A stretch of 64,000 bases of DNA from Chrysemys picta bellii. Lineage: Eukaryota. How positions within the stretch are numbered: the first letter of the stretch is position 1; every line of letters begins with the position of its first letter. Below are positions 1,431 through 59,941 of the stretch, in pieces. The stretch lies in NCBI RefSeq assembly GCF_011386835.1, contig NC_088810.1, positions 248,001 to 312,000 of the forward strand, given 5' to 3'. The position numbers and the translations under genes were made by a program. The notes beneath the pieces were generated by a model, which was given only the letters and a program-made list of their open reading frames with translations, made no database searches and was not told the origin of the DNA.

Positions 1431-1569
1431 GCTATTGCATGTGCAGAAACGCTTCCTTGCTTGTACTCAGTCACACACTCGCACTCCTGCTGCTGCCCCG
1501 TAACCCCCCACTCCCCCACTGGGGGTAGGGGTGTTAACTCATGACCTTTGACCCCCCCCTTGTCCCAAG

Positions 1570-16160: not shown

Positions 16161-17075
16161 CTGAGCTGCGGGGGTGGGGGGGAGCTCAGGCCATGCCTCT
16201 GTCACTCCCCATCACTTCCCCCCCCAAGCAATGTTGCCTCCCCCACAATCAATGGGTTGGCCCAGTCGCTTCCTGCCAACCCCAAGGAAACAGCCTCCTG
16301 CTGCCCCGGGACCCCCAACCCCTGTTATAGCAATGGGGGGGGGGCTTGCTCTGGATGAGCCATCCGGGCTCCCTGCATAAACCTCCCCCTTCCCCCTGAG
16401 GCTCCCTCACAGCCCCTGAGGGGGGCGCAAGGGGGTGGGCTCTCTCTCCCCAGCCAGGTGGGGGAAGGGGAATGGAGAGCGGCTGCAGCTCTAAATGCTG
16501 ATGAAATCGGGGGCTCCCAGTGGGGGAGATGCTGCGGGGGGAAGAGAGGAATATACTGGGGAACAGGGTTGGGGGAACAGCAGTGGTTCCTCCCATCTGC
16601 TCTGAGTAGGATGGGGGGACCCAGCTGAGGCTGCCCTGGGGGAGCTGGGGAGGGGGCTGACTGATAAATGGGGTTTGCGGGGTACCGCCAGGACTGCTGT
16701 GGGAAAGGGAGGTGGGGCAGAGCATGGACCAGTCCCTCCAAGCAAGTCAGAGAGGGGCTGAGCCTGGGTGGGGGGTGGATCCTACAAAGTCTACACATGG
16801 GGAAGGGGAAAGAAAAGTGAGGGACTTAGCCCCATAGCTCTGGCCCTAGGGTCCCATGCCACCCCCGCCACCACCCCCACCCTGCAGGGACCTATCCTCC
16901 AGCTCTTGGGTTCTCCCCACTTCTGCCTCTCCAAATCTCCCACCTGCACCCCAGAATCCTCCATATGTGCCCCACAGGGATCCCCCGCCCCTCCCCCACG
17001 CCAGCTCCATTGATCGAGCTGTTCCTGGAAGAGAGATGAGCTCATATCCCGGGGGGGGGGGGGGGGGGGGGGAAG

Positions 17076-23906: not shown

Positions 23907-24780
23907 AGCAGCTGGCGAAAGGCCGGAGGGGAGAGACTGTGCTTCCTGCACCCAGGGTTGGGCAGGGCGGGTCTGACCGAGGGGGAGGGAAGGAGGGAAC
24001 GAAGAAAAGAACAAGACAGAGCGAGCGAGAGAGAAAAGCGTAGAGGAAGCGACACAAACAAGCAGCTTCACAAGAGGGCCACAGGCAAGGCCTTGAGCCC
24101 CCCCTCCTGTCACATCCGGACAGGTCACTCCCCTCCCCCCCACTGAGGAGATGGGAGGGAGTGTGGGGGCGTTTTTACACACTGCGCACCTGTCAGAGCA
24201 AGTGTGAACCTGCAGCTCTGGGGCCTTTGGATCCAGGAGTGAGGGGCACTGGCAGAGCTGGGGGGTGGGGAGCCCAGTGCTGGGCTGGCAGGGGGCTGCG
24301 GGTCGGGGGTCAGGGGCACCGGCAGAGCTAGGGAGGGAGGAAGAGAGGAGCCCTGGGTGGCCAGGGGGCTGCAGGTCAGGGGTGAGGGGCACTGGCAGAG
24401 CTGGGGGGTGGGGAGACCAGTGCTGGGCTGGCAGGGGGCTGCGGGTCGGGGGTCAGGGGCACCGGCAGAGCTAGGGAGGGAGGAAGAGAGGAGCCCTGGG
24501 TGGCCAGGGGGCTGCAGGTCAGGGGTGAGGGGCACTGGCAGAGCTGGGGAGCCCAGGGCTGGGCTGGCAGGGGGCTGCGGGTCAGGAGTGAGGGGCACCG
24601 CCTGTCAGTTCTGTCACACCCTGTGCAGCTCTCTGGGTGATTTCCGCCGGGGGGGGCGGGAGCAGCCGGGAACCCGCCCCGGGCCTGAACCTACCTGTAA
24701 ATCCAGGTGCCGCTGACTCACCTGTGGCCTCGCCTGCCCCTGCCCCTGCCCCTGCCCCGGGGGCGCGCCTGGAACCCGCC

Positions 24781-35160: not shown

Positions 35161-35514
35161 TCCTCAGGCTCCGGGGTCCCTTGCCCCCAGAGTGGGGGAG
35201 GGGTCGCCAGCCAAACCCGGCTCGATCTCCTGGGTCCTTTGCCCCCGGGGTGGGGGTGAGGGGGGGTCACCAGCCAAACGCCGCTCGGTCTCCTAGGTCC
35301 TTTGCCCCCAGGGTGGGGGAGGGGTCACCAGCCAAACCCCGTTCTGCCCTTTTGCAATCTCATCGCCTCAGCAGGTGCCCCCTGCAGCCCCGGGCACCTC
35401 CAGGGAGCGGGCGCGCAGGGAGGGGGCGGCCTGGCTGCCCCGTGGGTGCCCACAGCCCCCGACTGAAGCCAGGGAGGCTGCAGCAGGCTGCAGCGGGGTA
35501 GAGGAAGGGCCACC

Positions 35515-41066: not shown

Positions 41067-44000
41067 ATGGAAGGGCCTTGTTTCTGGGACACCCCATATA
41101 AGGGGGTTCTGCTTGCAGGTGAGACAGAGCAGTGTGTTGGGGGAGCCCTGGGCTGGGCTAGGAGGGGTCTGTGGTTCGGGAGTGAGGGGCACCGGCAGAG
41201 CTGTGGGGGGAGCTCAGGGCTGGGCTAGCAGGGGTCTGTGGTTCGGGAGTGAGGGGCACCAGCAGAGCTGTGGGGGGAGCTCAGGGCTGGGCTAGCAGGG
41301 GTCTGCGGTTCGGGAGTGAGGGGCACCAGCAGAGCTGTGGGGGGAGCTCAGGGCTGGGCTAGCAGGGGTCTGTGGTTCGGGAGTGAGGGGCACCGGCAGA
41401 GCTGTGGAGTGAGGAGCCCAGGGCTGGGCTGGCAGGGGCTGCGGGTTGGGAGTGAGGGGCACCAGCAGAGCTGTGGGGGAGCTCAGGGCTGGGCTAGGAG
41501 GGGTCTGTGGTTCGGGAGTGAGGGGCACCGGCAGAGCTGTGGAGCGAGGAGCCCAGGGCTGGGCTGGCAGGAGGCTGCGGGTCGGGAGTGAGGGGCACCG
41601 GCAGAGCTGTGGAGCGAGGAGCCCAGGGCTGGGCTGGCAGGGGCTGCGGGTTGGGAGTGAGGGGCACCGGCAGAGCTGTGGAGCGAGGAGCCCAGGGCTG
41701 GGCTGGCAGGGGCTGCGGGTTGGGAGTGAGGGGCACCGGCAGAGCTGTGGGGGGAGCTCAGGGCTGGGCTGGCAGGGGCTGCGGGTTGGGAGTGAGGGGC
41801 ACCGGCAGAGCTGTGGGGGGAGCCCAGGGTTGGGCTGGCAGGGGTCTGCGGTTCGGGAGTGAGGGGCACCTTTCACCATCTCTCTTCCTCTCCCCTGTCC
41901 CGCCAGGCTGTCTCCTGTTGTGCTGGGGTCCCCGCGCTGTGGTTTGTACTGTTGTGGTGCACGTGATCCCGGAGGCTCCGTCCGTGGGGCAGAACATCAC
42001 TCTGTCCGTGGAAGTCGGCCTGGAGCTCCTGCGTCACTTCGACTGGTACCGTGGGCGGCTGACTGATGGCAGCACCCGCATCTTCAGCTACTTCCCGGGG
42101 CAGGACCGCCCCCAGCGCAACGGGGTGCAGTTCACGGGCCGCGAGGTTGGCTTTCCCAACGGGTCTCTGCTCCTCCGGGGCGCCCAGGCCAATGACAGCG
42201 GCATCTACCAGGTCGCCCTGCAGCTGGTGCCGCAGGGCAGCGAGAAGGGCACCGTGGAGCTGCGGGTGAGCGGTGAGTGGCCCCCCAGGGCCTGCCCCTT
42301 CCCCCAGACACCCCCAATCTCCCACGGCCCCCCTGACATGTCCACCCCCACCAGGGTGTGAGAGGAACAGCGTGGGGCTGCAGGTGGGTGGTAAATCACA
42401 TCCCAGAGACACCCCACCCTCTGGGACCCTCCGCAGGGATCCACCCGTCCCCCAGGGATCCCAGCACCATGGCCCCTCCACCACCCTGTGGGCAGGCGAG
42501 GTTGTAAAACTCACATGGGCTAAAGAATGAGCCGGTTACCTCAGCTAGTTGTCCTGCTGGTCTTTGGCTCTGTGTCCTTCGGCCAGAAAATTACTAGAAT
42601 CGGACGAGTTTAGTAGCAAAATAACATGGAAAGCAAATGAGAGCTGACAGCAAGCGTTCCGGACGGGCTGTATCGGGCCCCAGCAGAGGTGTTACAATGA
42701 CCAAGGGACAATCAATCCCAGCTGCTCTCCCACTACACGGGTCTGGGCTGGCGACCTAGCCCCTGAGCCAAAGCAGCTTGTGTGCCAGGGGATCACGGGG
42801 CTGCTTGTGGCAAGTCAACCAGCCAATGCTCCGGTGGGATTTGGAAATGGAGCCACGTCACTGCATGGCCTTGTCGGCTGTTGCCAGAGCCAGGGGGCCG
42901 GTTGTGCACGTGCAGGGCTATTGCGCACGAAACAGGCAGGGAGGGAGGCCGCAGGCCCCCAGGGCTGGTGCACTTGGTGGTGCAACCCGCAGCTCACAAA
43001 CCGATTCGGACCCTTTTCGTCTGGAGCCGCAGGGTCTGTGTGCGTGTGGCAGGCTCGGTTCTGTTAAACGCTGGGGTTCTTGCAGCGGCTTTCCCTGTCG
43101 GACTCAGCACTCTCGGGTACTTACTGACGCAGAATCGCGTCTACACCACTACGACCAAACTCGCTGACGCGATGCCAAGAGGCCGCGCGGAGCTCAGTCC
43201 CCTCAGGCGGGCCCGGCTGGAGACGTGAAACCCAGGCAGCCCTCGCGGGAGATTGTACCAGAGTAAACGTCGCACGATCACTGGAGCGAGGAGCGGGGAC
43301 ACGTTCCAGATCTGAGCCTGTGCCGCGGATCAGCTGGAGCTGGCATGGGTGGGTTCTGCCCTCGCTCCTGCAATGACCGGAGAGAGCCGGGCGTTCACTA
43401 GGTGACTCGCGCAGGGCGCTGGGTATAGAGCAGCTGTCTCTGGATTTCGCTGCTGTCTCTCCCCAGGGCCCTGCCCAGCGGAGCGAACCGGTGCTGTCAG
43501 TGAGGAGGCGCTAGCTGTGACCCCGTGGGGGGTGTTCTCATGGGCCAGAGATGCTTGGTCGCGGGGGAGTGAGGCACAGGGTGTTTGATACGATCGAGCG
43601 CTGCTCCGCACGGCAGCCTGGCCTGCTCCCTGCCCAGCACAGTGGCTGTGGCCAGCTGGAAAGCCAGGTTGGAAGCGTCCAGCCAGGATGTGAGCTGTGC
43701 CTTCTCCTCAGCCAGACAGGAAACAAGTTGTCTCCTCTGGGGCATCTTGCAATAGTGGGAAACTCCAGAGTTTCGGTGCAAAACCTCCTGGCTGGGGTGA
43801 GCCACGATGAGCCACCGCGTTTTGTGTGGGGCATGAGGGACCAGGCACCACTGGCTCTGTTCCAGGCTGCAGCCAGTTGGGGCAGTGACTTCCCATGGCC
43901 CAGTTGGGGCAGTGACTTCCCATGGCCCAGTCTGTGCTTGCCCCACCAGCAGGCCGTTGCAGAGTGTCTCCAGCACGTCCCTTCCCCTCGCGCAGGGCTC

Positions 44001-47000
44001 CGGCCTCGGTTAGTGGCTCGTCCGCACTGCCGTGATATAAACCCGTTCGACTCGCTCGCTTGGTCTGTCGCCAGCCCGAGACAGCGACGAAGGAACTCAG
44101 CGGCCCGTGGCTCCGTCCCCAGGCTGGGTTATCCCCGCAGCGCTGCGAGACGTCCCGTAGGAACTTCGTACGTGAGGGTCTCCGCGTGCTGCTGCCACTC
44201 ATGCCGCACGGCTGGGTCTCCAAGCACCAGTAGCTATCTCAGTGCGCCTGTCCCCAGGAGTGGGATTGGCTTAATTCTGGGGTGTGACTTCGTCGGGCTC
44301 CGGACCAGCCCGCTGGGTCGCCCTGGGGGTGACGTGCACAGCAGAGCTACTCATCCCGATGGCTTTGTAAGGCACCACTGAACGTGTCGGCTCCTGTGGC
44401 CCCGAACGCGCTGGTCGTACGCAGCCTTCGTTAAGAGCCCGTTCCCCAGCTCGTCGGGCATTGTCCGGCTGGGACGTGTAACCGTTTATCTGGGATGTTT
44501 CCGTGGCCAGCAGCATAAAGCTGAGAAAAGCGCAGCGTGCGGGTGGTCTGCGCATACGGGTCACACCAGGATCGGGTGAGCCTTGAACACTGGTTCCTTG
44601 GCAGGTCCGTGCCCCAGCTCACGGCTAGGCCCTGCAGTGTGTAGCAGAGACGCTCCTGTCAGCCTGGTCCGTCCAGCCCCCGGAGCGGCAGCCGTGAAGT
44701 CGGGGGAAGAATTCTTCCATGGCCTTAGCCGCATTCACACCGGGGCCCCTTGTCCTGGCTCGGGGTGTGAAATTCACGGAGCTGGGGCGGGCTGGTTTGT
44801 AGGTGTAGACCAGGCGTCGGACTCTCCGAGATCCTCACAGGAGCGAGTCCCTGTCTAGAGAACCCCCGGCCAGCCGAGAGCCCCGGGGGCCCCGCGCAGA
44901 TCACACTGCGGCTGCATGCAGGCGGCGCGCTCGGAGCTGTCCACAGGCCCTTACGGGCAGGCGCCCCGGGCAGCGACAGAGCCTCAAGCTGAGGGGGCTG
45001 TTGGCAAAGGCTGGGAACAGGTCCCGGTTCCGGATCCTGCACCGGCTCGGTCGCCGTTACCCAGTGGCAGCACCGGAGCTTGGGGGCAGCATCAGCCACT
45101 GGGTCTGCTTCGCATCCAGGCCCAAAGCACAGACACCGAAGGGGAAGGGACTCGGGTGTCGGGCTGGCCACTGGCAGTGGGGCCTGGGCCGGCCACTGGT
45201 CATTCCCCAGCATCGTGCTCCGGAGAGCAGCCGAGAGGCCTGGCCTGCCCATGGGGGATGTTGACTGCAGGCTGGTTAGAGACCCCCCCCCCGGGACTCC
45301 TCAGAGCCCCCCCATCCCCTCTCCATACCCCCCATGGCTTCCATCCCTCCAGGGACTCTCCATAGGTCTCCCCCACCTCCCAGGGACTGCCTCAGAGCCC
45401 CTCCATCGCCCCCATCTCCCCATGGCCTCTATCCCTCCAGGGACTCCCCCACCTCCCAGGGACTGCCTCAGAGCCCCTCCATCGCCCCCATCCCCCCATG
45501 GCCTCTATCCCTCCAGGGACTTCCCCCACCTCCCAGGGACTGCCTCAGAGCCCCCCCATCGCCCCCATCCCCCTCTTCCATACCCCGCAGGGCTTCCATC
45601 CCTCCAGGGATTCCCCATAGACTCCCCCACCTCCCAGGGACTGCCTCAGAGCCCCTCCATCGCCCCCATCCCCCCATGGCCTCTATCCCTCCAGGGACTC
45701 CCCCACCTCCCAGGGACTGCCTCAGAGCCCCTCCATCGCCCCCATCCCCCCATGGCCTCTATCCCTCCAGGGATTCCCCCACCTCCCAGGGACTGCCTCA
45801 GAGCCCCCCCATCCCCCTCTCCATACCCCCCATGGCTTCCATCCCTCCAGGGATTCCCCATAGACTCCCCCACCTCCCAGGGACTGCCTCAGAGCCCCTC
45901 CATCGCCCCCATCCCCCCATGGCCTCTATCCCTCCAGGGACTTCCCCCACCTCCCAGGGACTGCCTCAGAGCCCCTCCATCGCCCCCATCCCCCCATGGC
46001 CTCTATCCCTCCAGGGACTTCCCCCACCTCCCAGGGACAGTCTTGGAGAACCCCCATGGACTGCCCCGGGGACCCCCAACCCGTCAGCCCCCAGGGGGAG
46101 CCAGAGGGTGATCCCTCCCCAAACCCCATAGCCCCCCTCATTTCCCAGCCCAGGACTACTGCTCTGTCCACAGGGACCTCCTGGGGTCCCCCCAAGCCCC
46201 AGCTCCCCCCAACACTAACCTCTCCTCAACTCTCTTCCTTGCAGCCCCGGCGACCACCCTGGGCCCAAGGACCGCTGCCCCCCCCCGGGCTCAGGCACAG
46301 GGCCTCCCCCAGCCACAGCGGCGCCCAGCACCCCACAGGTCCTGGGCTGGGTGGTGGCGGGGGTCGTGGTTGGGATTTTGCTGACCGGAGCTCTGGGAGC
46401 CGTGGTCATCTACCACCTCGTCCTGCGCAGGTCGGACCTGGCCGGAGGGTAAGCGGGGGGGTGGGGGGGTAGGATGCTTGGGTTCTCTTTGGCTCTGGAA
46501 GGGGAGCGGGGTCTAGTGGTTAGAGTTGGGGGGGGGGGGAGGCGAGGCTGGGAACCAGGATGCCTGGGTTCTCTCCCTGGCTCTGGGAGGGGAGTGGGGT
46601 GTAGTGGGTTAGAGCGGGAGGGAGGAGGGGGGCTGGGAGCCAGGACACCTGGGTTCTTTTCTCCTGGTGAGGTGGGGTGGGGATTCCCTTGGGATTATCA
46701 TGTTAGCTCCCGGCTCTGTTTAGCTCCACAGGAAAACTGGATCCCAAAGGGAAGAAACCACCAAGATCTGCCAGGGGTGAGTCACAGTCCTGATGTGGGG
46801 CTTGGGGGTGGGGCTGAGAACCCGGACGCCTGGGTTCTATCTCCCATTCTCTCTCCAGATGACACGGAGCCGATTTACGAGGTGATGGAGTCTCCGTTGG
46901 AGTTGCCCCAGCCAGAGGGGAGAAACCCCGAAACTGACCCCCAACCCCCCCCGGTGAGTGAGACTGGGCTAGGCACTGCCCCCCTGGGGACCCCATGGGC

Positions 47001-47443
47001 ACTGCCCCCCTTGAACTCCTGGCATGCTGCCCCCCGGTCACTGCCAGGTACCGCCCTCCCCATCCCCCCCCCCCCGCCCACAGAGCCTGCCCCCCTTCCC
47101 CACAAGCTCCTGGGTCAGAGCCTCTCCCTGGGGTCTGTTCCCGGCCAGTGGGCTGGGGGGCAGGAGGTATCCTGGAGGGGGCTGGGGTCAAGGGCAGGTT
47201 ATAACGACTCTCTCTCCCCTCCCCCATGTCTTGCAGGCCGTGCCCTTGCCTCCCCAGCCAGACCCCAACTACACGGTGAGTCCCCCAAGTTCAGCTTCCT
47301 GGGGGAGGGGGGGGGAACGAGGGGCTGGGCGGGTCCATGCGTCCGGGATCCTCCCCCACGTCTGTCTGTCCCTAATGGCCCCTCTCCCCTGGCAGGAGCT
47401 GCTGCAGCGAGCCGAGTCCGTGTACGCCCAGATCCAGAGGTGA
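41067..47443 (+). CDS. CEACAM19: CEA-related cell adhesion molecule 19 (leader, one N domain, stalk, TM, Tyr-motif tail); about 285 aa after correcting an apparent 1-base frameshift
   Basis: Exons 41067-41118, 41907-42272, 46245-46448, 46724-46776 (53 nt), 46859-46953, 47237-47275, 47396-47443; probable non-coding exon ending at donor 40406/7. N domain FDWYRG...TRIFSYFPGQDRPQRNG...VGFPNGSLLLRGAQANDSGIYQVA and tail IYEVMESP ... YTELLQRAESVYAQI closely match human CEACAM19. ATTAAA at 48012-48017. Confidence 0.85.
42520..44950 (-). mobile_element. Probable heavily decayed hAT-family transposase remnant in a CEACAM19 intron
   Basis: Minus-strand fragments across frameshifts, in the expected order: LGLATDQAS (DDE-like), PHKTRWL/SWLTPARRF (TRW motif), IPPEHW, WES..D, IQPVRNACCQLSF (resembles the hAT dimerization P-x-S-x-A-x-x-E-R-S-F). 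No TIRs identified. Includes a 27-bp tandem duplication at 43873-43926. Confidence 0.4.
45290..46040. repeat. About 60-bp minisatellite in a CEACAM19 intron
   Basis: About 12 units of CCCACCTCCCAGGGACTGCCTCAGAGCCCCTCCATCGCCCCCATCCCCCCATGGCCTCTATCCCTCCAGGGA. Confidence 0.95.
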
Positions 47444-48199
47444 CGCCAGCCGCAGAGTCCACTGGGGGGAACCCCCCAACAGGGAACCGCCCAGGGATGC
47501 CCCCTGCCGTGGGGAACCCCCCCAACGAGGAGCCACCCAGGGACACCCCCCTGCCATGGGGAACCCTCTGAGGGTCCCTGCAATTGGGATCCCTGACCAC
47601 AAGGACCCCACCCATGGGGAACACACACAGAAAAACTGGGGTACTGTCCCAGGCAGCTCCACCCACACAGAGCCTGAGCACCCCCCAGTGGGGTACCCCT
47701 CAGCAAACCTGGGAACCCTCCACAGCACCCTTGACCCTCCCAAAGGGACCCGCTCCCGGCATCCATGGAAACCCCTAGAGACACCCCCCTCATTATCCAT
47801 GGGGAACCCCCCAGGAGAACTCCCACCCTCAGCCTGCAGGCCAGACCTCACACCCTGGGGATCCCCCCATCAGCATTTCCAGGGAACCCCCTCACCCCCA
47901 AACCCAGCCTCCCGGGGCCCTCCAACGCCGGAGCCTGGATCAAACCGCTGGAGGAAGAGCTGAGCTGCAGGCCGGTGCTGGGAGCAGATGGGGGGCACCC
48001 CCAGCCCCACTATTAAACCTTGTTCCTCTGCCATAGTCTCCCTTCTACTCTGCTCTGGCTTGGGGGGCGCAGGGGGAGATGGGGGGTGGGATGGAGACTT
48101 AGGGGGCTGCCATTACACAGAGACCCCTCCCTGCCCCCCTGTGCCTGACTCTTTCCCCCCCCCACCCCAGTGCCAGGCTGAGATCAGCTGCCAAAGACT

Positions 48200-48205
48200 T
48201 TTATT
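48200..48205 (-). terminator. Poly(A) signal of CEACAM-like gene A
   Basis: AACCTCAATAAAAG on the minus strand; the same 14-mer occurs at 54378-54391 for gene B. Confidence 0.75.
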
Positions 48206-48317
48206 GAGGTTCAGTGGGGGTGGGGAAGGGGGGGGCTGGGATGGGAGGGGGAGAGACTGGTCACTCTCTCCCCAATTCTTGCTGGCCCAGTTGGGGGTGA
48301 ATCCTGGCTCCATCCGG

Positions 48318-49595
48318 TCAACCTGGAAAAGACGAGACTTCATCAGGGGGAAGGGTCACAACCCCCCCGAATCCCCTACCGAGCCTCCCTGCCCCATGGT
48401 GCCCCCTGCTGAGACCCCTGCCCCGTCCTTGCCTCCATGGCGCCCCCGTTGCTCTTACCAGAGACCTGCAGGCGCCCGAAGGCCTCGGAGTAGCGCCCGC
48501 CGGCCTGGAAGACGAGGGTATAGTCCCCACTGTCCTGGGGGGTCACCCCTGTGATGCGCAGGGAGCAGTCGTTGGCAGGCGTTTCCCGCCCAGTGAAGGC
48601 CGGACCCCGGTGCAGCTCCCACGGGGGCACAAAGATCAGGATCTGCTGGGACTGTGCTGTGGTGAGTCCTCGGTACCAGGCGCAGAGCTGGGCAGGTCCC
48701 TGCATCCCCTGCACGGCCAGGGTCACGGCCTGCCCCACACGGGGCTGGGGGGGCACTGGCATCAGGGTGACACTGGCCCCGGCAGGCAGGAGGCTGGAGA
48801 ACAGGACACAGACTGGGGGCGGGGGGGAGGGTGGAGAGTACATCAGAAGTGGGATGCGCCCAGCTCTGCCGTGCCCCTCAAGCCTGACCCGCAGCCCCCT
48901 GCTAGCCCAGCCCTGCCCCCCCAGCCCTGCCGGTGCCCCTCACTCCCGACCCGCAGCCCCCTGCTAGCCCAGCCCTGCCCCCCCAGCCCTGCCGGTGCCC
49001 CTCACTCCCGACCCGCAGCCCCCTGCTAGCCCAGCCCTGCCCCCCTCCCCCAGCTCTGCTGGTGCCCCTCACTCCTGACTCGCAGCCCCTGCCAGCCCAG
49101 CCCTGGCTCCCCCCCAGCTCTGCCGGTGCCCCTCACTCTGGACCCGCAGCCCCCTGCCAGCCCAGCCCTGCCCCCCTCCAGCTCTGCCAGTGCCCCTCAC
49201 TCCTGACCCGCAGCCCCCTGCTAGCCCAGCCCAGCCCTGCCCCCCTCCGCCAGCTCTCCTGGTGCCCCTCAACCCTGACCCACAGCCCCTGCCAGCCCAG
49301 CCCTGCCCCCCTCCAGCTCTGCCAGTGCCCCTCACTCCTGACCCGCAGCCCCCTGCTAGCCCAGCCCAGCCCTGCCCCCCTCCGCCAGCTCTCCCGGTGC
49401 CCCTCAACCCTGACCCACAGCCCCTGCCAGCCCAGTCCTGCCCCACCCCCCCAGCTCTGATGGTGCCCCTCACTCCCCACCTGCAGCCCCTGCCAGCCCA
49501 ACCCTGGGCTCCCTCCTGCCCTCACCTGCCAGGATTCGGCCCATCCAGGCGGTGCCCCACGGGGGGCAGGGGTTGGTGCCGGAGAGTCCCCCCAT
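48318..49595 (-). CDS. CEACAM-like gene A: leader + single IgV/N domain, predicted secreted, 142 aa
   Basis: Leader exon 49595-49526 (MGGLSGTNPCPPWGTAWMGRILA); N exon 48812-48459 (VCVLFSSLLPAGASVTL...LCAWYRG...GPAFTGRETPANDCSLRITGVTPQDSGDYTL...RLQVS); last exon acceptor at 48322 gives G-stop (48320-48318). All introns phase 1 and GT-AG. Confidence 0.8.
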
Positions 49596-49952
49596 GGTCC
49601 TGTGTGTTGTGCGAATGTTGCTGGTGCTGCGTGAGGCAGCCAGGCTGGGTGGGATGGGGTCTGAGGGGAGTGGGGGGGCGGGGCGGTTGCCTAAGAGGCC
49701 TGAACAGGGAGAGGATGTTGGGTAAGAAACCCACAGAGCAACGGAGCCCTGCCCCCTCCCCCTCCCATCCCTGAACTGCCCCGGTGCTCCCCAAGCTCCC
49801 TGGCCTCTCCCCTCAGCACTGGGGGGGCAATATCAGGCATATGAATGCACCCGTCTGGGCCACAGAGGGGCAAGTAGCCAGGCCTCCCCGTGGCTTCCCC
49901 CCCTGAAAAAGTGAGAATTTTCTGTAATAGTTTTATGAATCCTGCCCGTGCC

Positions 49953-50075
49953 CAGGGTGACCAGACAGCAAGTGTGAAAAATCGGGACGGGGGTGGGGGG
50001 TAATAGGAGCCTATATAAGAAAAAGACCCAAAAATTGGGACTATCCCTATAAAATCGGGACATCTGGTCACTCTA
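49953..50075. mobile_element. hAT-type MITE, 123 bp
   Basis: TIRs CAGGGTGACCAGA / TCTGGTCACTCTA; perfect 8-bp TSD CCCGTGCC (49945-49952, 50076-50083). Confidence 0.85.
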
Positions 50076-50687
50076 CCCGTGCCTCAGTTTCCCTCTGGAC
50101 TGGAAAAAGGGCTCAGTCCCCTGCTAGAGCCGCGCAGGCGGCGGGAGTCTGTGGCGAATGGGCTGGTCCAGGCAGACAAAGTGCCACCCTGAGGATTGAC
50201 CCCCCCCCCCGGCAGCAGGACACCCCCGAGAGAGGGGCCGGGGAGCCAGCCATGGACGTGATCACGGCTGGGCTGGCTCATCACAGCGCCGGCCTGGCTG
50301 GGCCATGGCTAACGGCTGCCTCTCTGGGCCGGCCCCAGGCCCCGGGCCTGCAGCCGGGGGCTGAGTGGGGCCCCAGGCTCTGCACAGGGGCTGGGGTCAC
50401 TGCCACTGCCCCAGGGGCCTTGCGCCTGCAGGGTCTGGCTGGGCCGGACTCCGGCAGGGACCCTCAGGGGAAGGGGGGGGGGCTGTTGCTGGCGGTCCAG
50501 TCCTGGAGCCCACGGCCCTCTGCCCAGCCCTGGGGGTCCCTGGGGCCTGGCCCAGTCAGGGGTCGCGCCCAAGAGGCTGGTTGCAAGCTGGGGCATAGGC
50601 CAGACCCTGTGACTCCCCCCCCCCGGCCCTTCCCCCTCTGCCCCCCTTCTCCCCCTCCACCCCCTGCCCACTCTTCTCTCCCCCACT

Positions 50688-50902
50688 CAGGGCCGGCTCC
50701 AGGGTTTTGGCCGCCCCAAGCAGCCAAAAAAATAAAGCCGCGAGCGCGATCTGCGGCGGCAATTCGACGGGAGGTCCTCCGCGCCGAGCGGGAGTGAGGG
50801 ACCGTCCGCCGAATTGCCGCCGAATAGCTGGACGTGCCGCCCCTCTCCGGAGGGGCCGCCCCAAGCACCTGCTTGCCCGGCTGGTGCCTGGAGCCGGCCC
50901 TG
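50688..50902. mobile_element. hAT-type MITE, 215 bp (same family as 63471-63719)
   Basis: Perfect 16-bp TIRs CAGGGCCGGCTCCAGG / CCTGGAGCCGGCCCTG; TSD CCCCCACT / CCCCCACC (7/8). Confidence 0.85.
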
Positions 50903-53900
50903 CCCCCACCCCAGAGGTCCTGTGCCCTTCCCCCCTGCTGCCCCCCACCCCGGGCGGCCTGCCCCCCACCCCTGCAGCACTGCCTGCCCCTCCTCCCCCA
51001 TGCCCCCCCCCGGGAATCCCTCAATCTGTGGGTTCCTTACTTAACCCTCTCCCCCATATGCTGCCCCCAGGAAATGGGGCAGAACGGGGCAGCTCGAAGA
51101 AGGGGCGGGGACTGGCAGGTGAGCTGGGGGGGGCAATGGGTTCAGCTCTCGCTCCCAATTCCCTACTTTGGGTGAACTGAGCATGCCCAGTAACCTTCGC
51201 TGTCGCCACTGCCCTCTCTCTGCCCTCACTTCTGCTGACGATTTGCTGCCTCCTCTTTGGGGGGGTTAAAGGGATTCAGGGGGCAAATCGCCGCGGGGGC
51301 TGTCCGGGTCTGAGCAGGGGGCAGAAATTTACTGGCCAGGGGGGCTCAAGCTACTGTAGCTAGCGGCAGAAGAGGGGCCGAAGGGGAAAACTCGGGGGTG
51401 GGGGGTGGGGTTAAGCCGTGGGGGGGGAGGAGACACTGCCAGACCCCGTGCGGGTACAAAACCCCCGTTTAGGGAGGGGGGAACAGTGACCCCGTGGGAT
51501 GGGGCACCCGCTGTGCTCGCTAATCTGGGGGGGGGGGCAGAGGCGGTTTTCGCTGCAGGTCAGCCCCCCCCCCCCAGCAGGGGGCGGGTCCCTGGGACTG
51601 GGGTCTTAAAGGCACAGGCCAATTCCTAGCCTGTCAAAGCTTAATCCCCGCAGCTCCTCTCTATCCTATACAAGTGTTGCAGGGCTGCCCGGGGGGGCAA
51701 GTGGGGCAATTTTCCACAGGGGCCCCCACGAGTATGTCGGAGGCTGCCCCCACCCCCGTCTTCCCCCAAGCCCCTGTGTCTCAGCGTGCCGCGTCCGGGA
51801 GCGGCCCTGGCGCGCTGCAGCGCCATGGCTCCAACGCTGTCCGAGGCTGCTCCTGGACGCTGAATCCTCTGGGCAGCCCTGTGTAGGGCTATGTTACTGC
51901 TCCAGCCAGGAGACTGAATGCGGTGAAATATTGTACAGACCCTCCCTCCCTCCAACTCTGCCTCTCACATTTTGAATATGTAAAAGTGTCTTCTATCAGT
52001 TTCTATGTCTATATGAAATCGCTGCAGCTCCTTTCTCTTATATAACGTGCTGAGTTGCTAACTCCCTCCCAGAGCCCACATATCCGCACCCCCTCCTGTA
52101 CCCCAATCCCATGCCCCAGGTCAGAGCCTGCACCCCTCACTCAAACTCCCCATAGCCTGCAACCCTCCTGCACCCCAACTCCATCCCAGAGCCTGCACCC
52201 CAAAAAGGGCTGGATTAACCTTTTGTGGGCCTGGAGCTAAACATATTTGTGAGCCCCCATGGGGGAAATGGGGACATGGGGCAGGGGGGCAGAGTCCTCA
52301 GAGCGACGGGCTGGCCGGGGGCAATGGGAGATGAGATGGGTCATGGCACGGCAGGGACAGCCCCGTTCCACCCAGCGCAGTACAAGGGCACTGTTTACAA
52401 ACCGGGAGCTGCCAGACGCACACTGGCCAGCCCGACCCTGCGCTCCCATCGTGCTTCTTCCACTTCGGGGCAGTCCCATGCTGCACCATGCTACCCCGTG
52501 CCCAGCACCCCTCTGACTCCCTACGCCCAGTGCCACACCACCCAGAGACCCCCACAAACCTCCATGCCCAGTGCCCTCCCACAGACCACTCCCCCACCCA
52601 CTCAGAACCCCCCCACAGGTCCTCTCACTGCCCAGTGCCCCCTAGCTGGAGACCCCCCACAGCCCTCCCACAACTGCACAGTGCCCTGCACCTCCCCGCT
52701 CAGAGCCCCCCACAGATTCCCTCACTGCCCAGTGCCCCCCACCACCCCACTGCCACAACTGCACAGTGCCCCGCACAGACCCCCCCACACACTTCCCAGC
52801 ACCCCGTCACACACAGATCTCCCCACTGCACAGCGCCCCCAACACACACAGATCTCCCCACCCCCCACTGCACAGCACCCCCCCAGACCCACTAGAGACC
52901 TACTCTCCCACACCCTAACCCCCAGCCACAATACCCGGCCCTGATGGGAGGTGACTGTGTCTGCCAGGCTGAGCCGGCAGCGCAGCCAGAGCTGGTCCTG
53001 GGGCAGGATAACTCCGGCCCTTGGGGGTGCAATCAGCCAGGCTGGAGCAGGAGCAGGGCCTACCCGGGCCAGGCTCCCTCAGGACCCACATGCCTGGCAG
53101 GACCCAGCTGAGCCGCCGTCCCCTGTGACTGGCTGAGACTGGCCCAGCCTCTGCACCAGTCCCGGGTGGCTCTTTCCCTGGGGGGGCAGGTGGGGCCCCA
53201 CAGGTCCCAGGCAGTGGAGACAGCTCAGAGCTGGAGCAGTGCTGGGGAGTGGGGCAGATCCCTGGGACGTGACTCCCGAGATCCCCCCCACACCCGTTGG
53301 CCCCGTGGCCAGCAGCCCTGCCGAGCCCACATGGTGGCCCCCAGCTGCTGGGTGATGAGCCCCCTACAGCAGCGGCATAGCCAGGTTCTCACATCAGGGA
53401 TTTCGTGTATAGTGAGTGTATTATATACAAAACAGGTAGTAGGGTTTACAATGTTATAACAAGAGGTTATGCTATTACCATTCTCCAGTCAACTTGCACA
53501 CCACTCTTTTGAATTAGTGATAACTGAGAGAGAGAGAAAGAAAAAAGCTGAATTTAGAGAATAATTATTAACCAGATTCTTGGTTATTCACTAGCCACTT
53601 TGCTCCAGTCCACAGCACACAGCACCATAAACCCAGTAGAATCTGGCCAAGAGAATATTCACCTCCAATTGGCATCTGCTACACCCCCCCCCATATCCCA
53701 GTCCCCACTATTCAGGAGATAGCAATCGCCAATAGATCAGTTTGGCACATTAGCCAGGAGGAAGCAGATCGTGAGTGTTTTTGATCACAAACCCCATCCC
53801 TCCTGATTCGCAGCCCCATGGACCAGGCGGTAGCAAGTAGCCCAGATGGGCACGTTGCTGGCGGAAACCGCACCCAGTTGCAAAACGGGAAGGTTTCTAT

Positions 53901-54379
53901 ACGTGTCGTCACACCTGGGACGCAGAATGAGCCCCCTCCCCCCGCCCGCCACGGGTCTATGTGTAGCCAGGCGGGTGCCTGCCGGGGGGGGGGGAGAGCG
54001 TGTTCTAGGGGTTAACGCTGCCCCCCCCAGGCTGGAGTTTGTGCAGAGGTGCGAGGCTGGGACCTGGGGCCTCTACGATCTGCTCCCCCCAACCTTGTCT
54101 GCGGGTGGGAGGGGGCGATAGGGGAGGTTCCCCTTTGGGAATCTCCAGCCCCCCTGGTTCCGCGGCGCCCCTGGAGCAGGGGGGGTCACCTGCTCCCTGC
54201 TGGGGGCCAAGAGCAACCTGGCGACGGCGGGGGGGAGAGAGACCCGGGACCGCCCATCACACAGCCCCCCCCCCCGCCTCCCCCATGCACCTGGCCCCTC
54301 TACAGGTGGGGCCTGTCCCCGGCCCCCCATTTACCTGCCCCCCGACACAAACTCCAGGCTGCGGCTCAGTTCCGAGGCT

Positions 54380-54385
54380 TTTATT
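54380..54385 (-). terminator. Poly(A) signal of CEACAM-like gene B
   Basis: AATAAA on the minus strand about 210 nt after the stop. Confidence 0.75.
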
Positions 54386-54591
54386 GAGGTTATTGGGGGG
54401 GAGGGAGATTTGGGAGGGGTCTGGGGGAGGGACGTTGGGGGGAGTGGGGGAGGGGCCTGGGGAAGGGGGGAGGGAAGAAAGGGGTTGGGGTGGGGGAAGG
54501 GCGGTGAGGGGGATTTGGAGGGAAGGGGCTGGGATCCGGTAACAGCTCCAGGACCTCCGGGTCGGGGGCAGCAAATCCGGACATCGCCCGG

Positions 54592-55459
54592 TCACCCTGC
54601 GAACAAAGAGAGCATAAGTGGGAGACAGCCCCCCCCCATGGAGCAACTTGCTGCCCAACCCCCTTCCCCCACGGCGCCCCCCTACCAAGCACCCCCACCC
54701 CACTCCCTGCCCCATGGCGCCCCCTGCTGAACCCCCACCCTGACCCACAGTGCTCTCTGCTGAGCCCCCCACCCCGTCCTATGGAGCCCCCTGCTGAAAC
54801 CCCCACCCCACCCCACGGTGCCCTCTGCTGAGCCCCCCGTCCCACAGTGCCCCCTCTGAGTCCCCCGCCCCACAGTGCCCCCTCTGAGCCCCCCACCGTG
54901 CCCCTTCTTGCTCTTACCGGCGAGCTGCAGGCGCACGAAGAGCGCTTGGGACCGACCCCTGGCGCGGATGACGAGGGTGAAGCTCCCGTTGTCCTGGGGG
55001 GTTAACCCCACAATGCGCAGGGAGCAGTCGCCCCCCAGGGTTTCGCGCCCCGTGGACGCCGGCCCCTGGCTCTGCGTGTCCGGGGAGGTGAAGGTCAGGA
55101 TCCGATCGGTCTCGGATGTGGAGCTTCTGCGGTACCAGGTGCAGCTCTGGGCGACTCCCCGGGCCCCCCCCACCAGCAGGGTCACCGTCTGCCCCACAGT
55201 CGGGTGGGGGGGCACCACTGCCACCCCAAAATCAACAGCGCCGGCCAGTGGGAGGCAGGAGAACAGGACACAGACTGCGGGGGGGGAAGGGCGGGAGGAC
55301 GTCAGAAATGGGAACCCCCCAGCTCTGCTGGTGCCCCTCACTCCCGACTCGCAGCTCCTTCCTATCCCAGTCCTGCCCCCCTCACTCACCTGCCAGGATT
55401 GGGCCTGTCCAGGAGCTGGCCCAGGTGTGGGCGTGGGGGGCACCTGGGAGATGCCCCAT
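54592..55459 (-). CDS. CEACAM-like gene B: leader + single IgV/N domain, predicted secreted, 143 aa
   Basis: Leader exon 55459-55390 (MGHLPGAPHAHTWASSWTGPILA; 70 nt as in gene A); N exon 55274-54918 (VCVLFSCLPLAGA...SCTWYRR...GPASTGRETLGGDCSLRIVGLTPQDNGSFTL...RLQLA); last exon acceptor at 54596 gives G-stop (54594-54592). Confidence 0.8.
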
Positions 55460-55619
55460 GTCCAGTCTGTGCTGGGGTTGAACAGGCTGAGGGGGGAGGG
55501 TGCCCGGCGGGTGAATCCTGGTGCGGCGGAAGGGCAGGGATGGGTGCGGGGGGGGGGAGTTGCCCAACAGGCCCCAGGGGAGGGGATGTTGGGTAAGAAA
55601 GAAACCGACAGAGCAACGG

Positions 55620-56677
55620 AGTCCTGCCCCCCCGTCCTCTCTGCCCCCCCATCCTCTCTGAACCCCGCCCCAGGCCACAGGCCCCACTACAACACACCCG
55701 AGTCCCTGCCCCCCCACACTCTGTACCCCCCCGTCCTCTCTGCCCCCCTGCACTCTGTATCCTGCCCCCGTCCCCACTGCCCCCCCGCACTCTGTACCCC
55801 ACCCCGTCCTCTCTGCCCCCCCGCACTCTGTATCCTGCCCCTGTGCCCACTGCCCCCCTGCACTCTGTACCCCACCCTGTTCTCTCTGCCCCCCTGCACT
55901 CTGTACCCCCCATCCTCTCTGAACCCCGCCCCAGGCCACAGGCCCCACTACAACACACCCGAGTCCCTGCCCCCCCACACTCTGTACCCCCCTCCCCGTC
56001 CTCTCTGCCCCCCTGCACTCTGTATCCTGCCCCCGTCCCCACTGCCCCCCCGCACTCTGTACCCCACCCCGTCCCCACTGCCCCCCTGCACTCTGTACCC
56101 CGCCCCGTCCTCTCTGCCCCCCCGCACTCTTTACCCCCCTCCCCGTCCTCTCTGCCCCCCCGCACTCTGTACCCCCACTCCCCGTCCTCTCTGCCCCCCT
56201 GCACTCTGTACCCCCCGTCCTCTCTGCCCCCCCATCCTCTCTGAACCCCGCCCCCGTTCCCACTGCCCCCACTACAACACGCCCAACTCCTGCCCCTCCC
56301 CCCACACTCTGTACCCCCGTCCTCTCTGTACCCCGCCCCAGGCCACAGCCCCCACTGCAACACACCCGACTCCTGCCCCCCCACACTCTGTACCCCACCC
56401 CGTCCTCTCTGCCCCCCCGCACTCTGTACCCCACCCCGTCCTCTCTGCCCCCCCGCACTCTGTACCCCGCCCCCGTCCCCACTGCCCCCCCGCACTCTGA
56501 ACCCCGCCCCCGTCCCCACTGCCCCCACTGCAACACGCCCAACTCCTGCCCCTCCCCCGCACTCTGTACCCCCCGACCTCTCTGAACCCTGCCCCAGGCC
56601 ACAGCCCCCACTGCAACATGCCCGACTCCTCACTGCCCCCCTGCACTCTGTACCCCCCGTCCTCTCTGCCCCCCCAT
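55620..56677. repeat. C-rich about 33-bp minisatellite, left part (continues at 60728-61190 beyond the LTR element)
   Basis: CCCCGTCCTCTCTGCCCCCCCGCACTCTGTA units on both sides of the insertion. Confidence 0.95.
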
Positions 56678-57256: not shown

Positions 57257-59941
57257 TTACACCAGGCCCCTTCCGTTCCACGCCCCCCCCTTAGGTCGGG
57301 GGTGCTTGATGGCACTCGCAGTTCGCATGTGGGAAGGTTTATGCGGCCTGTGCCCTTTTCCCACCCCCATACCTCTGGGGTTCCAACTGGGCTGTGGTCT
57401 TCTCCCAGCGCTCCAGTCTGGAGGTCTGTGCTTTGGGCTCTCTTGGTTTAGAGCCGCCCTTTTAACCTTGGCCACCCTCTGGAAAGGATCCTTTATGCTG
57501 GGCAAGGGTCCTAAAGCTGTTTTCCCCTTGTCCCAGGCCTTCCTCCCCCTCTGACAGGGGTCACAGGATCCGCAGTACTGTCGGACAGTAACAAAGACCC
57601 CAGGCCAGTAAAAGCTCCGTAGCAGCCTCTGCTGGGTACGCCAGGTTCCCTGGTGCCCTGAGAGGGGAATGTCATGGGCCCGGCACAGCAGCTGGCGGCG
57701 ATACTTCTGGGGTACCACCAGCTGCCTCCTGATCCCCCCTGACTCCATTTTCCCTGGGGGAGCCCATTCTCGGTACAGGAACCCCTTCTCCCACAGGAAC
57801 CTTTTCCGGCCACCTCGTTCCATGGTCTGTACCGCATTGAGGTCGGCCAGGTCCCTTATTTTCCGCAAGGAGGGGTCTCTCTGTAGCTCGGCCTGGAACT
57901 CAGCAGCTGGGACAGGGATGGCCACCTGCTCTTTCTCGCCCGCTGGGTCCGAAGCTGCAGCCTCCCTGAGCCGCGTCCCTGGGCGTTCCCTCCCCACCAG
58001 GTTAGGGTCCTGCGCCTCAGGCAAGGCACCCCCCCCAAGGCCAGGGCGCAGGGCCCCTCGCCGGCTCTGACTGCGGGTCACAACCAGTGCCTTTTGGGGG
58101 TTGCTTGGCCAGTTCTCCAGGTCCCCCCCCATCAATACCTCAGTGGGCAAATACGGGTGTACCCCCACATCCTTGGGGCCCTCCTTGGCCCCCCACTTCA
58201 GGTGTACCCTTGCCACGGGCACTTTGACTGGTGTTCCGCCCACCCCCGTCAGGGTCAGGTAGGAGTTGGGCACCACCTGATCTGGGGCCACCACCTCGGG
58301 CCGGGCCAGCGTCACCTCTGCGCCCGTATCCCAGTATCCATTGACCTTCCTCCCATCCACCTCCAGGGGAACAAGGTACTCTCTCCGGAGGGACAGCCCC
58401 GCGCCCACCGTATAAACCAAAAACCCTGAGTCTGGGGCATCCAGCCCCCTAGAGGAGCTGGCCTGGGGCCCTTCTCTCTCTTGAGCAGTTGATAAGCTGC
58501 CAGCCCCTCTTGCGTGAGAAGCCTGCCCCTCGTCCGTCTGGGCCTCTACCAAGTTAACCCTATGCGGGTTCGGTCTGCTCAGTCTGTCCTTGAGCTTGGG
58601 GCACTGGGCCCGAACGTGGCCTCTTCGGCCGCAGTAATAGCAGCTCATGTCCCGTGGGTCCCCTCGAGCCGGTCGGTTGTCCCTGACGCTGGGCATTCCC
58701 CGTGGGAGGGGATTCCCCATATTCCCTCTTTGGGAGGTCCCAGGGTGACTCTCTCTCTGCATCGCGGCGGGCCTGTTCCTTTGGGGCTCCTCCCTGCCAC
58801 CCCCTGACCGGCTCTTTACAAACTCATCAGCCAGCTGCCCGGCGTGTCGCGGGTTCTCTGGCTTTCTGTCCACCAACCACAGCCTCAGGTCGGATGGGCA
58901 CCGCTTATACAGTTGCTCCAGTACCAGCAGTTTAATCAGGTCCTCCTTCGTCTGGGCCCCACCAGCCCACTTGCTGGCGTATCTTTCCATGCGGACGGCT
59001 AGTTGCAGATATGAGATCTCAGGGGTTTTATCTTGACTCCGGAACCTTCCCCGGTACATCTCAGGAGTCAGCCCAAACTCTCGTAGCAGGGCCCTTTTGA
59101 ATAGTTCGTAGTCCCCTTTCTCTGCCTCTCCCAGTTGGCGGTACAATGCCACGGATTTGGGGTCCAGTAAGGGGGTAAGGACCCGGAGTCTGTCCGCGGG
59201 ATCCACCCGGTGCAGCTCGCAGGCCGTCTCAAAGGCCTCCAGGAAGTCATCCATGTCCTCCCCCTCCTTGTATGGGGCCATGATGCACTTATCAAAGCTC
59301 CGTGCAGTCCCGGGTCCCCCCTCACTCACCGCAGCCGGGGGTTCGCTGCCCTTCAATCTCGCCAGTTCCAGGTCATGCTGACGCTGTCGCTCTTCATGCT
59401 GTCTCTGTCTCTCATTCTCCTCCCGTTCATGCTGTCTCTGTCTCTCTTCACGCTGATGCTGTCTCTCTTTCTCCTCCCGTTCATGCTGTCTCTGTCGTTC
59501 ACGATCCTCCAGCTCTCTCAGTTTTAGCTCTTTCTCCCATTCCAGCCAATTCCGCTCCCCGGATGCCGAACGTCGCCGGGAGGATCCTCTGCTGGCCGGC
59601 GAGCTTCGCCGGGGGGACCCCCTGCTGGCCGGGGGGGTCACGGCGCCTTCGGTATTTGCTGGGCTCCTCCCCACCCTTCCCCTAGGCATAGGAAGGAGGG
59701 GTCTCGGGAAGCCCTCAGCAGCCGGCTGACCACTCCCAGCTGGGACAGACACTGGTGCCTGCGCTGCATTTGCCAGGCTGCTTCCCTGAGACACAGGGAT
59801 CAGTTCATTCGCACGATCTTCCGCCTCCAGCTGGGCAATGAGCTGTTCTTTGGTGAGCCTCCCAATGCGCAGCTGCCTCTGCTTGCACAGCTCCACCAGG
59901 TCGCTCTTAAGCCGCTTGGCATACATCTTCCTGCTGGCCAC
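57257..59941 (-). CDS. Retrotransposon Gag-protease-truncated integrase polyprotein, 894 aa
   Basis: N-terminal SAP/HeH-like segment, E/R/Q coiled coil, SCAN-like capsid (LLREFGLTPEMYR...LLVLEQL), zinc knuckle CYYCGRRGHVRAQC, aspartic protease WDTGA, integrase zinc finger HDIPLSGHQG...FYWPG...CGSCDPC, then PFQRVA and unrelated sequence; no DDE core and no YxDD. Confidence 0.9.
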   Translation of the reverse strand: MASRKMYAKRLKSDLVELCKQRQLRIGRLTKEQLIAQLEAEDRANELIPVSQGSSLANAAQAPVSVPAGSGQPAAEGFPRPLLPMPRGRVGRSPANTEGAVTPPASRGSPRRSSPASRGSSRRRSASGERNWLEWEKELKLRELEDRERQRQHEREEKERQHQREERQRQHEREENERQRQHEERQRQHDLELARLKGSEPPAAVSEGGPGTARSFDKCIMAPYKEGEDMDDFLEAFETACELHRVDPADRLRVLTPLLDPKSVALYRQLGEAEKGDYELFKRALLREFGLTPEMYRGRFRSQDKTPEISYLQLAVRMERYASKWAGGAQTKEDLIKLLVLEQLYKRCPSDLRLWLVDRKPENPRHAGQLADEFVKSRSGGGREEPQRNRPAAMQRESHPGTSQRGNMGNPLPRGMPSVRDNRPARGDPRDMSCYYCGRRGHVRAQCPKLKDRLSRPNPHRVNLVEAQTDEGQASHARGAGSLSTAQEREGPQASSSRGLDAPDSGFLVYTVGAGLSLRREYLVPLEVDGRKVNGYWDTGAEVTLARPEVVAPDQVVPNSYLTLTGVGGTPVKVPVARVHLKWGAKEGPKDVGVHPYLPTEVLMGGDLENWPSNPQKALVVTRSQSRRGALRPGLGGGALPEAQDPNLVGRERPGTRLREAAASDPAGEKEQVAIPVPAAEFQAELQRDPSLRKIRDLADLNAVQTMERGGRKRFLWEKGFLYREWAPPGKMESGGIRRQLVVPQKYRRQLLCRAHDIPLSGHQGTWRTQQRLLRSFYWPGVFVTVRQYCGSCDPCQRGRKAWDKGKTALGPLPSIKDPFQRVAKVKRAALNQESPKHRPPDWSAGRRPQPSWNPRGMGVGKGHRPHKPSHMRTASAIKHPRPKGGAWNGRGLV

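Follow-up and report, generated by a model that had tools for sequence, protein, structure and literature searches.

Mouse CEACAM10 and human PSG5 are secreted members of the carcinoembryonic antigen (CEA) family, the former with two N domains and the latter with an N domain and IgC (constant-type immunoglobulin) domains. A smaller plan has been described in the horse, where PSG-like CEACAMs are secreted as a leader and one N domain; these genes are recent, lineage-specific derivatives of CEACAM1 with nonsense mutations in the A-domain exon and with placental expression (PMC2832619, PMC10440875). For reptiles, the available text of a CEACAM survey by Zimmermann and Kammerer (preprint, June 2026, PMC13278318) counts painted-turtle CEACAM1L1 and CEACAM1L2 among the CEACAMs that are possibly secreted. 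Here, a 64,000-nucleotide (nt) stretch of painted turtle (Chrysemys picta bellii) DNA was analyzed (contig NC_088810.1, positions 248,001 to 312,000 of the forward strand; the whole stretch is called the window, and all coordinates refer to it), and two neighboring genes on its minus strand, termed gene A and gene B, were compared with these systems. The locus is best read, with a probability of about 0.8, as an intact tandem pair of paralogues from an old reptile family of secreted CEACAM proteins that have a single IgV (variable-type immunoglobulin) domain, the N domain. Genes A and B thus resemble mouse CEACAM10 and human PSG5 in their predicted secretion but have one N domain each. They match the horse genes in the predicted leader and single N domain; in contrast to those genes, the reptile family appears to be old and is under purifying selection.

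Both genes followed the same exon plan, and their features were as follows.

49712 to 49750, minus strand: conserved block upstream of gene A, a putative core promoter or 5' untranslated region (UTR) element.
49526 to 49595, minus strand: coding part of the gene A leader exon, 70 nt, with the ATG at 49595 and a phase 1 GT donor; equals residues 1-23 of XP_023968873.2 (P0159).
48459 to 48812, minus strand: gene A N exon, 354 nt, with the end of the signal peptide and a CEACAM-type IgV domain; equals residues 25-141 of P0159.
48180 to 48322, minus strand: gene A last exon, with 2 coding nt, TGA at 48320-48318, the 3'UTR and AATAAA at 48205-48200.
55585 to 55625, minus strand: conserved block upstream of gene B, matching the gene A upstream block.
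55390 to 55459, minus strand: coding part of the gene B leader exon, 70 nt, with the ATG at 55459; equals residues 1-23 of XP_023968874.2 (P0160).
54918 to 55274, minus strand: gene B N exon, 357 nt, with a CEACAM-type IgV domain and one N-glycosylation sequon (NGS); equals residues 25-142 of P0160.
54360 to 54596, minus strand: gene B last exon, with 2 coding nt, TGA at 54594-54592, the 3'UTR and AATAAA at 54385-54380.

When the minus strand was read, all coordinates agreed with a preliminary description of the stretch, which had proposed a 70-nt leader, an N exon of 354 or 357 nt and an acceptor followed immediately by a stop codon. The introns of genes A and B were GT...AG in four of four cases. 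Leader and N exon shared a split valine codon (G/TC, the slash marking the exon junction) and the N exons ended in phase 1, as in the exon structure given for the CEA family in the available text of PMC13278318. The acceptor AG of the gene A last exon was found at 48324-48323, giving the split codon G/GT and then TGA; in gene B the split codon G/GG was likewise followed directly by TGA. From the positions of the poly(A) signals, the transcripts would end at approximately 48180 and 54360, respectively. The common poly(A) context and the upstream block that had been ascribed to both genes were also present. The 14-mer AACCTCAATAAAAG occurred in exactly two copies on the minus strand, at 48211-48198 and 54391-54378, one in each 3'UTR, and a block reading CTCCGTTGCTCTGT...TTCTTACCCAACATCC was located 5' of each ATG, at 49746 in gene A and 55621 in gene B. 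The upstream blocks of A and B were approximately 90% identical over about 60 nt, well above their flanks, and in the turtle Platysternon the block was kept while the flanks were not. The spliced models of A, B and the neighboring CEACAM19 are predictions read from genomic sequence and not from RNA. In these models, exons 1 and 2 would code for the N domain and, in split form, for a signal peptide of the CEACAM type; the phase 1 donor of the N exon would join a last exon contributing 2 nt and a stop, so that the protein would end just past the G strand.

Some minor features were observed next to these exons. The motif CCGTTG was noticed by eye in the upstream blocks (49746-49712 and 55621-55590, minus strand); its reverse complement, CAACGG, is a MYB-type core. 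Intron 1 of gene A (48860-49520) is taken up by a minisatellite whose unit (GGGCTGGGCTGGCAGGGGCTGCGGGTCAGGAGTGAGGGGCACC...) measures about 65-70 nt; this repeat was also found at 41139-41870 (upstream of the CEACAM19 N exon), 22568-24600 and 15877-16190, and it cross-matched a Platysternon repeat. A G-rich tandem array with units like GGTACAGAGTGCGGGGGGGCAGAGAGGACGGGG (55640-56640, minus strand) abuts the gene B promoter block on its upstream side and contains very long spurious open reading frames (ORFs) on both strands.

Genes A and B belong to the CEA gene family (CEACAM/PSG), of the N-domain type. Their N exons matched the Pfam V-set domain (7e-11 for gene A and 9e-8 for gene B), and the best sequence matches in the PDB were the N domains of CEACAM1, 8, 5, 6 and 3 (2e-9 to 1e-5). 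The gene A protein, modeled with AlphaFold2, had predicted local distance difference test (pLDDT) values above 93 over residues 38-142. The first 36 PDB structure matches of this model were CEACAM N domains only (CEACAM1/3/5/6/7/8 and CEACAM15), and the TM-score, normalized to the target, was 0.76-0.91 against single-N-domain chains of CEACAM1/3/5/6/7/8. Both N domains carried the motifs WY[KR]G, TGRE and D.G.Y.L that mark CEACAM N domains. The canonical B-F disulfide was absent, the B- and F-strand positions (VTLAV, YTLVF) being free of Cys; a non-canonical disulfide is predicted to link Cys67 and Cys106. The stop codon was found one residue past the G strand in both genes, and no match to the IgC, transmembrane (TM) or cytoplasmic exons of turtle CEACAM1-like proteins was found anywhere in the 64-kb window. 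The proposal that constant-domain and TM exons are lacking was therefore upheld, the ORFs ending just after the N domain, and the products carried no GPI signal either. The leaders, as assessed by eye, were CEACAM-like, with a hydrophobic core and AGA followed by S or V. Both products are probably secreted. The mature A and B proteins would have 106 and 107 amino acids (aa), masses of 11.4 and 11.3 kDa (an estimate of about 12 kDa had been given before) and isoelectric points of 7.8 and 9.7, respectively. There was one N-glycosylation sequon in the gene B protein and none in that of gene A. The two proteins were 53% identical in aa sequence, and their differences by region amounted to 58% in C-C'-C'', 52% in A-B, 50% in F-G and 27% in D-E. 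A clustering of these differences on the CFG face was considered, and it was not clear from these values.

Both genes are present in RefSeq, as XP_023968873.2 (gene A, 142 aa, "pregnancy-specific beta-1-glycoprotein 5-like") and XP_023968874.2 (gene B, 143 aa, "CEACAM10"). The comparison was made piecewise and not on a joined sequence: the translations of leader and N exon and both split codons were exact matches. Moreover, an annotated locus (L004; GCA_011386835.2, CM062337.1) was 100% identical to positions 38318-59595 of the window. The proteins and the locus are the same as in the RefSeq models, with no difference, and genes A and B are very probably the CEACAM1L1 and CEACAM1L2 of the preprint (PMC13278318, as far as its available text goes). 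The gene pair is already known, being annotated and mentioned in a specialist preprint, and the earlier impression that this arrangement was undescribed has to be given up. The discovery value is small, since RefSeq holds both genes with the same models and a flag exists in the available text of PMC13278318. What is added is a picture at the family level: a family that appears ancient and conserved, with a fixed exon design and, in squamates, a place in the CEACAM16 slot. The names "PSG5-like" and "CEACAM10" are automatic best-match labels and do not denote orthology; one family carries the inconsistent automatic names PSG5-like, CEACAM10, CEACAM16 and CEACAM8-like.

Four points weigh against the reading of A and B as separate genes for secreted single-N proteins. 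The signal peptide is a prediction judged by eye only. The match to the preprint names CEACAM1L1 and CEACAM1L2 is a probable one and is based on a mention in the text. Logan was absent from the listed sources of both C. picta proteins, and no Logan assembly is known to encode them. Lastly, the protein model P0162 joins the N exon of B to that of A in frame (54918>48812), which could represent a read-through isoform. P0162 (261 aa) and P0156 (252 aa, Ensembl) are older or alternative C. picta models over window positions 48460-55459 that describe a two-N secreted protein. It is very unlikely, however, that A and B mainly form one transcription unit in which the B leader and N exon are spliced to the A N exon, to give a secreted two-N protein like mouse CEACAM10 or the two-N proteins of snakes. 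In favor of such a unit, the two N exons share phase 1 and orientation, a 54918>48812 splice would preserve the reading frame, both models join the two N exons and snake two-N relatives exist (P0034). In contrast, the current RefSeq release has two separate genes, each gene comes with an ATG leader, an upstream block, a last exon and a poly(A) signal of its own, all of which Platysternon retains, and the turtle Carettochelys has gene B alone with the same last-exon design. A Logan contig (L005; P0074) was considered as a spliced N-only cDNA and rejected: an intact GTAAGT donor was read through and no CEACAM leader was present, indicating genomic or unspliced sequence.

Orthologues of gene A were found in Emys, Terrapene and Platysternon, and orthologues of gene B in Malaclemys, Terrapene, Platysternon and Carettochelys. 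The Platysternon contig QXTE01000519 (L001) was collinear with the window and contained B, A and CEACAM19. In this species, gene A kept the N exon (94.5% nt identity), donor, acceptor, GGT TGA and poly(A) context, and gene B kept the leader, N exon and acceptor, with an end that reads G/GA TGA. In Carettochelys, the end of gene B reads A/GG TGA. The ORFs of A and B were intact in every turtle sampled. Ratios of nonsynonymous to synonymous substitution rates (dN/dS), determined by the Nei-Gojobori method on the N exons, were 0.28 for gene A and 0.30 for gene B against Platysternon; with both genes pooled, 18 changes were nonsynonymous and 22 synonymous, a departure from neutrality (binomial p = 2e-4). 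For gene B against Carettochelys, dN/dS was 0.45 at a dS of 0.31. These findings show that selection on A and B is purifying and not diversifying. They bear out the claim that the ORFs are intact under selection: the check for disrupted orthologues with dN/dS near 1 returned, in turtles, intact ORFs and values of 0.28-0.45. Between the paralogues A and B, dS was 0.45 and dN/dS 0.87-0.97, a pattern that fits rapid divergence after duplication followed by constraint.

Only a B-type gene was found beside CEACAM19 in Carettochelys, and gene A was missing between B and CEACAM19. The Carettochelys gene grouped within the B clade in the IQ-TREE analysis described below, which places the A/B duplication before the split from Carettochelys; gene A may have been lost there or be located elsewhere. 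Its absence speaks in favor of the view that A, B or both are relics without expression, with ORFs that have stayed open by chance. That view is highly improbable, given that the ORFs are intact in all turtles sampled, that nonsynonymous changes are below the neutral expectation (p = 2e-4), that conservation extends to splice sites, stop and poly(A) signal and that the family has persisted since the split of turtles and squamates.

To place A and B among reptile genes, an exhaustive profile-free protein search was combined with name look-ups. RefSeq relatives were found in Hemicordylus, Rhineura, Sceloporus and Crotalus; they measure 123-141 aa, and longer isoforms have 140 and 175 aa. Like A and B, the squamate single-N CEACAMs have a leader-N-stop plan and end in ...LQVS plus one residue, and they share a Cys two residues before the C-strand W and a Cys in DC[SA]L. 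In Rhineura, the one squamate checked at the exon level, the N exon ended in phase 1 and the last exon read cag/AC TGA, the same design of 2 nt plus TGA. Identity to gene A was 37-43%. These relatives are named "CEACAM16-like" (Hemicordylus, Sceloporus, Rhineura) or "CEACAM8-like" (Crotalus) in RefSeq, and CEACAM1L1-3 for snakes in the available text of the preprint. Unlike the turtle pair, snakes possess two-N forms as well, and snake proteins are reported in the same text to carry RGD-like motifs (PMC13278318).

In an IQ-TREE analysis of 61 N domains, turtle A and B and the N-only proteins of squamates (lizard, snake and amphisbaenian) formed one clade (98/98), to which neither the turtle CEACAM1-like clade (99/100) nor the CEACAM19 group belonged. 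Within the single-N clade, A and B were sisters with weaker support (84/76). By this grouping, A and B are placed as members of an old reptile-wide family and not as a new turtle invention, and the tree supports an age of the turtle and squamate family at least as great as the ancestor of turtles and squamates. The cysteine pair was considered as a family signature and ruled out, as the CEACAM1-like N domains of reptiles carry the same pair. In Sceloporus undulatus, two tandem single-N genes of 131 aa and 141/175 aa (L007, 6266-8565 and 10001-14103) were observed between BCL3 and CEACAM19; they parallel turtle A and B, by a duplication that is either independent or shared. Genes A and B are thus not seen as fast-evolving decoys derived from CEACAM1 but as part of a family that is conserved across reptiles and has a fixed exon plan, and this family offers a concrete, testable lead on the role of a minimal one-domain soluble CEACAM.

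The surroundings of A and B bear on two further explanations. The neighboring features were as follows.

about 1545 to 1778, plus strand: BCAM-like Ig exon.
19268 to 19492, minus strand: CBL-type RING piece.
28529 to 35163, minus strand: ankyrin-repeat gene with BCL3-like repeats.
about 42 to 48 kb, plus strand: CEACAM19 gene.
41963 to 42292, plus strand: in-frame part of the CEACAM19 N-domain exon (Pfam V-set, 3.7e-10).
46339 to 47443, plus strand: CEACAM19 TM and cytoplasmic exons; the TM exon starts at 46339 and has a hydrophobic 19-mer, a split immunoreceptor tyrosine-based activation motif (ITAM) has its Y at 46876-46878, and the last coding exon is 47396-47443.
48012 to 48017, plus strand: ATTAAA as a candidate poly(A) signal of CEACAM19; the gene A AATAAA is about 190 bp away.
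57263 to 59941, minus strand: transposon-like ORF, uninterrupted, 893 codons, just upstream of gene B.

The order of genes in the window, BCAM, a CBLC-like RING gene, the ankyrin gene (BCL3-like), CEACAM19, A and B, corresponds to the synteny of the CEA locus. The CEACAM19 ITAM spans the last two exons: PIYE at a GT donor, with ELLQRAESVYAQI beyond the junction; the acceptor is followed by ELLQRAESVYAQIQR and the stop at 47443. The motif would read YEEL-x7-YAQI across a single last-intron junction. The end of the coding sequence at 47443 agreed with the annotated gene on L004. The CEACAM19 N domain was 84-92% identical in aa sequence to the Carettochelys and Platysternon neighbors and 56-57% identical to the squamate neighbor gene, and in the IQ-TREE analysis it grouped with a CEACAM19-like N domain from a snake model (99/97). 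The N exon, the TM 19-mer, the split ITAM and the BCL3-like neighbor confirmed that the facing gene is an ITAM-type CEACAM19, and the reported spacing of about 190 bp between the convergent poly(A) signals was found again between the ATTAAA at 48012 and the gene A AATAAA. Two observations concern CEACAM19 models. The annotated product (L004 12153-17530, corresponding to window ~42066-47443, plus strand) has 212 aa and no Pfam match despite the intact V-set exon at 41963-42292, and this model may miss or misframe the N exon. An Ensembl model of Pseudonaja textilis (P0103, 413 aa) combines a CEACAM19-like N domain with two IgC domains and, at the C-terminus, an N domain that bears a Cys, an N-A-B-N order as in CEACAM16; it is possibly a chimera of adjacent genes or a real four-domain protein.

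The convergent adjacency of A and CEACAM19 is real, and the convergent layout was kept in Platysternon and Carettochelys, in the latter with B only. In four squamates (Rhineura, Hemicordylus, Sceloporus and Crotalus), in contrast, the order was the ankyrin gene (minus), the N-only gene or genes (plus) and CEACAM19 (plus), and the first exons of the squamate ankyrin gene matched the ankyrin gene of the window. Turtle A and B are located beyond CEACAM19 and not between BCL3 and CEACAM19. As the squamate N-only genes are in tandem with CEACAM19 on its BCL3 side, the facing arrangement is a turtle feature and not a feature of the family. The preliminary description of genes facing CEACAM19 was thus correct for turtles, including Platysternon and Carettochelys, and did not extend to squamates.

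The adjacency had been taken as the sign of a soluble decoy or ligand module of A and B paired with the facing ITAM-type CEACAM19, which would soak up pathogen adhesins or feed CEACAM19. Apart from the convergent layout kept in Platysternon and Carettochelys, such a module would follow a decoy logic that is established for CEACAM3 and, in the available text of PMC13278318, proposed for reptile CEACAM1-like genes. In that text, however, the proposed paired or decoy CEACAMs of reptiles have N domains that are 86-99% identical, and the turtle CEACAM1 N domain has a dN/dS of approximately 1.5. Identity to the CEACAM19 N domain was 35% for A and 30% for B, and both were only about 40-47% identical to turtle CEACAM1-like N domains. 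The dN/dS of A and B was 0.28-0.45, compared to the ~1.5 given for turtle CEACAM1 in PMC13278318, and in the four squamates the family is in tandem with CEACAM19 on the BCL3 side. Neither a near-identical N domain nor diversifying selection, the marks of paired or decoy CEACAMs, was found in A and B. The pairing with CEACAM19 is therefore improbable and was not retained, in view of the N-domain identity, the purifying selection and the squamate gene order. As members of a family of secreted single-N proteins, A and B would rather act as soluble ligands or modulators, their N domain binding a conserved host partner, by analogy to PSGs and soluble CEACAM8, and the two may have gained different specificities after the duplication that preceded the Carettochelys split.

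The squamate position also invites a comparison with CEACAM16. In mammals, BCL3 is directly downstream of CEACAM16 and the BCL3-CEACAM19 interval holds CEACAM16 (PMC2832619), the slot that the N-only genes occupy in the four squamates. Mammalian CEACAM16 and the reptile family are alike in secretion (predicted for the reptile proteins), in conservation and in the BCL3-CEACAM19 neighborhood, and the name is applied to some reptile members, CEACAM16 being the NCBI gene name of those of Carettochelys and Rhineura. It can be suggested tentatively, though it is doubtful, that the turtle and squamate single-N genes form one ancient orthologous lineage that is the sauropsid counterpart of the CEACAM16 locus. 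If so, mammal-specific CEACAM16 would have arisen from a one-domain secreted precursor by exon gain, or reptiles would have reduced CEACAM16, and the reptile proteins could hold a conserved extracellular-matrix or sensory role and not an immune one. A related explanation, by which the reptile single-N genes correspond in position to CEACAM16 (as orthologue or co-orthologue) and encode a matrix component, for example of the tectorial membrane, and not an immune modulator, is unlikely. In its favor are the squamate slot, the NCBI names, the shared secretion and purifying selection, the second family cysteine, which is retained in CEACAM16 N2, and approximately unbiased (AU) tests in which a sister-group relation of the family to CEACAM16 N2 (p 0.23) or N1 (p 0.47) was not rejected. 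However, CEACAM16 is N1-A-B-N2 over ~425 aa and the reptile genes have a single N domain, a domain order different from that of CEACAM16; CEACAM16 N1 is without both family cysteines, and the cysteine pair is also present in reptile CEACAM1-like N domains. There was no positive tree support, and the turtle CEACAM1-like clade fits at least equally well as sister group (p 0.61, likewise not rejected). The turtle genes are on the far side of CEACAM19. The available text of the preprint reports no CEACAM16 in reptiles (PMC13278318), and CEACAM16 is called mammal-specific in the title of a 2012 paper by Kammerer et al. (cited in PMC6582249). A deep placement of the family was attempted and given up: the AU tests failed to separate CEACAM16 N1, CEACAM16 N2 and turtle CEACAM1-like, and the IQ-TREE backbone did not resolve it. 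The squamate occupancy of the CEACAM16 slot nevertheless provides a testable lead on the origin of CEACAM16.

Two further observations were made on the flanking genes. The turtle BCAM-like (plus), CBL-type RING (minus) and BCL3-like ankyrin (minus) genes differ in orientation from the human order CEACAM19-CEACAM16-BCL3-CBLC-BCAM, in which all genes are on the same strand. The 893-codon ORF upstream of gene B contained SCAN, CCHC zinc knuckle and integrase H2C2 zinc-binding domains (Pfam 4e-11, 3e-4 and 1e-17, respectively), and it resembles a retroelement of the Gypsy/Gmr30 type or a domesticated form of one.

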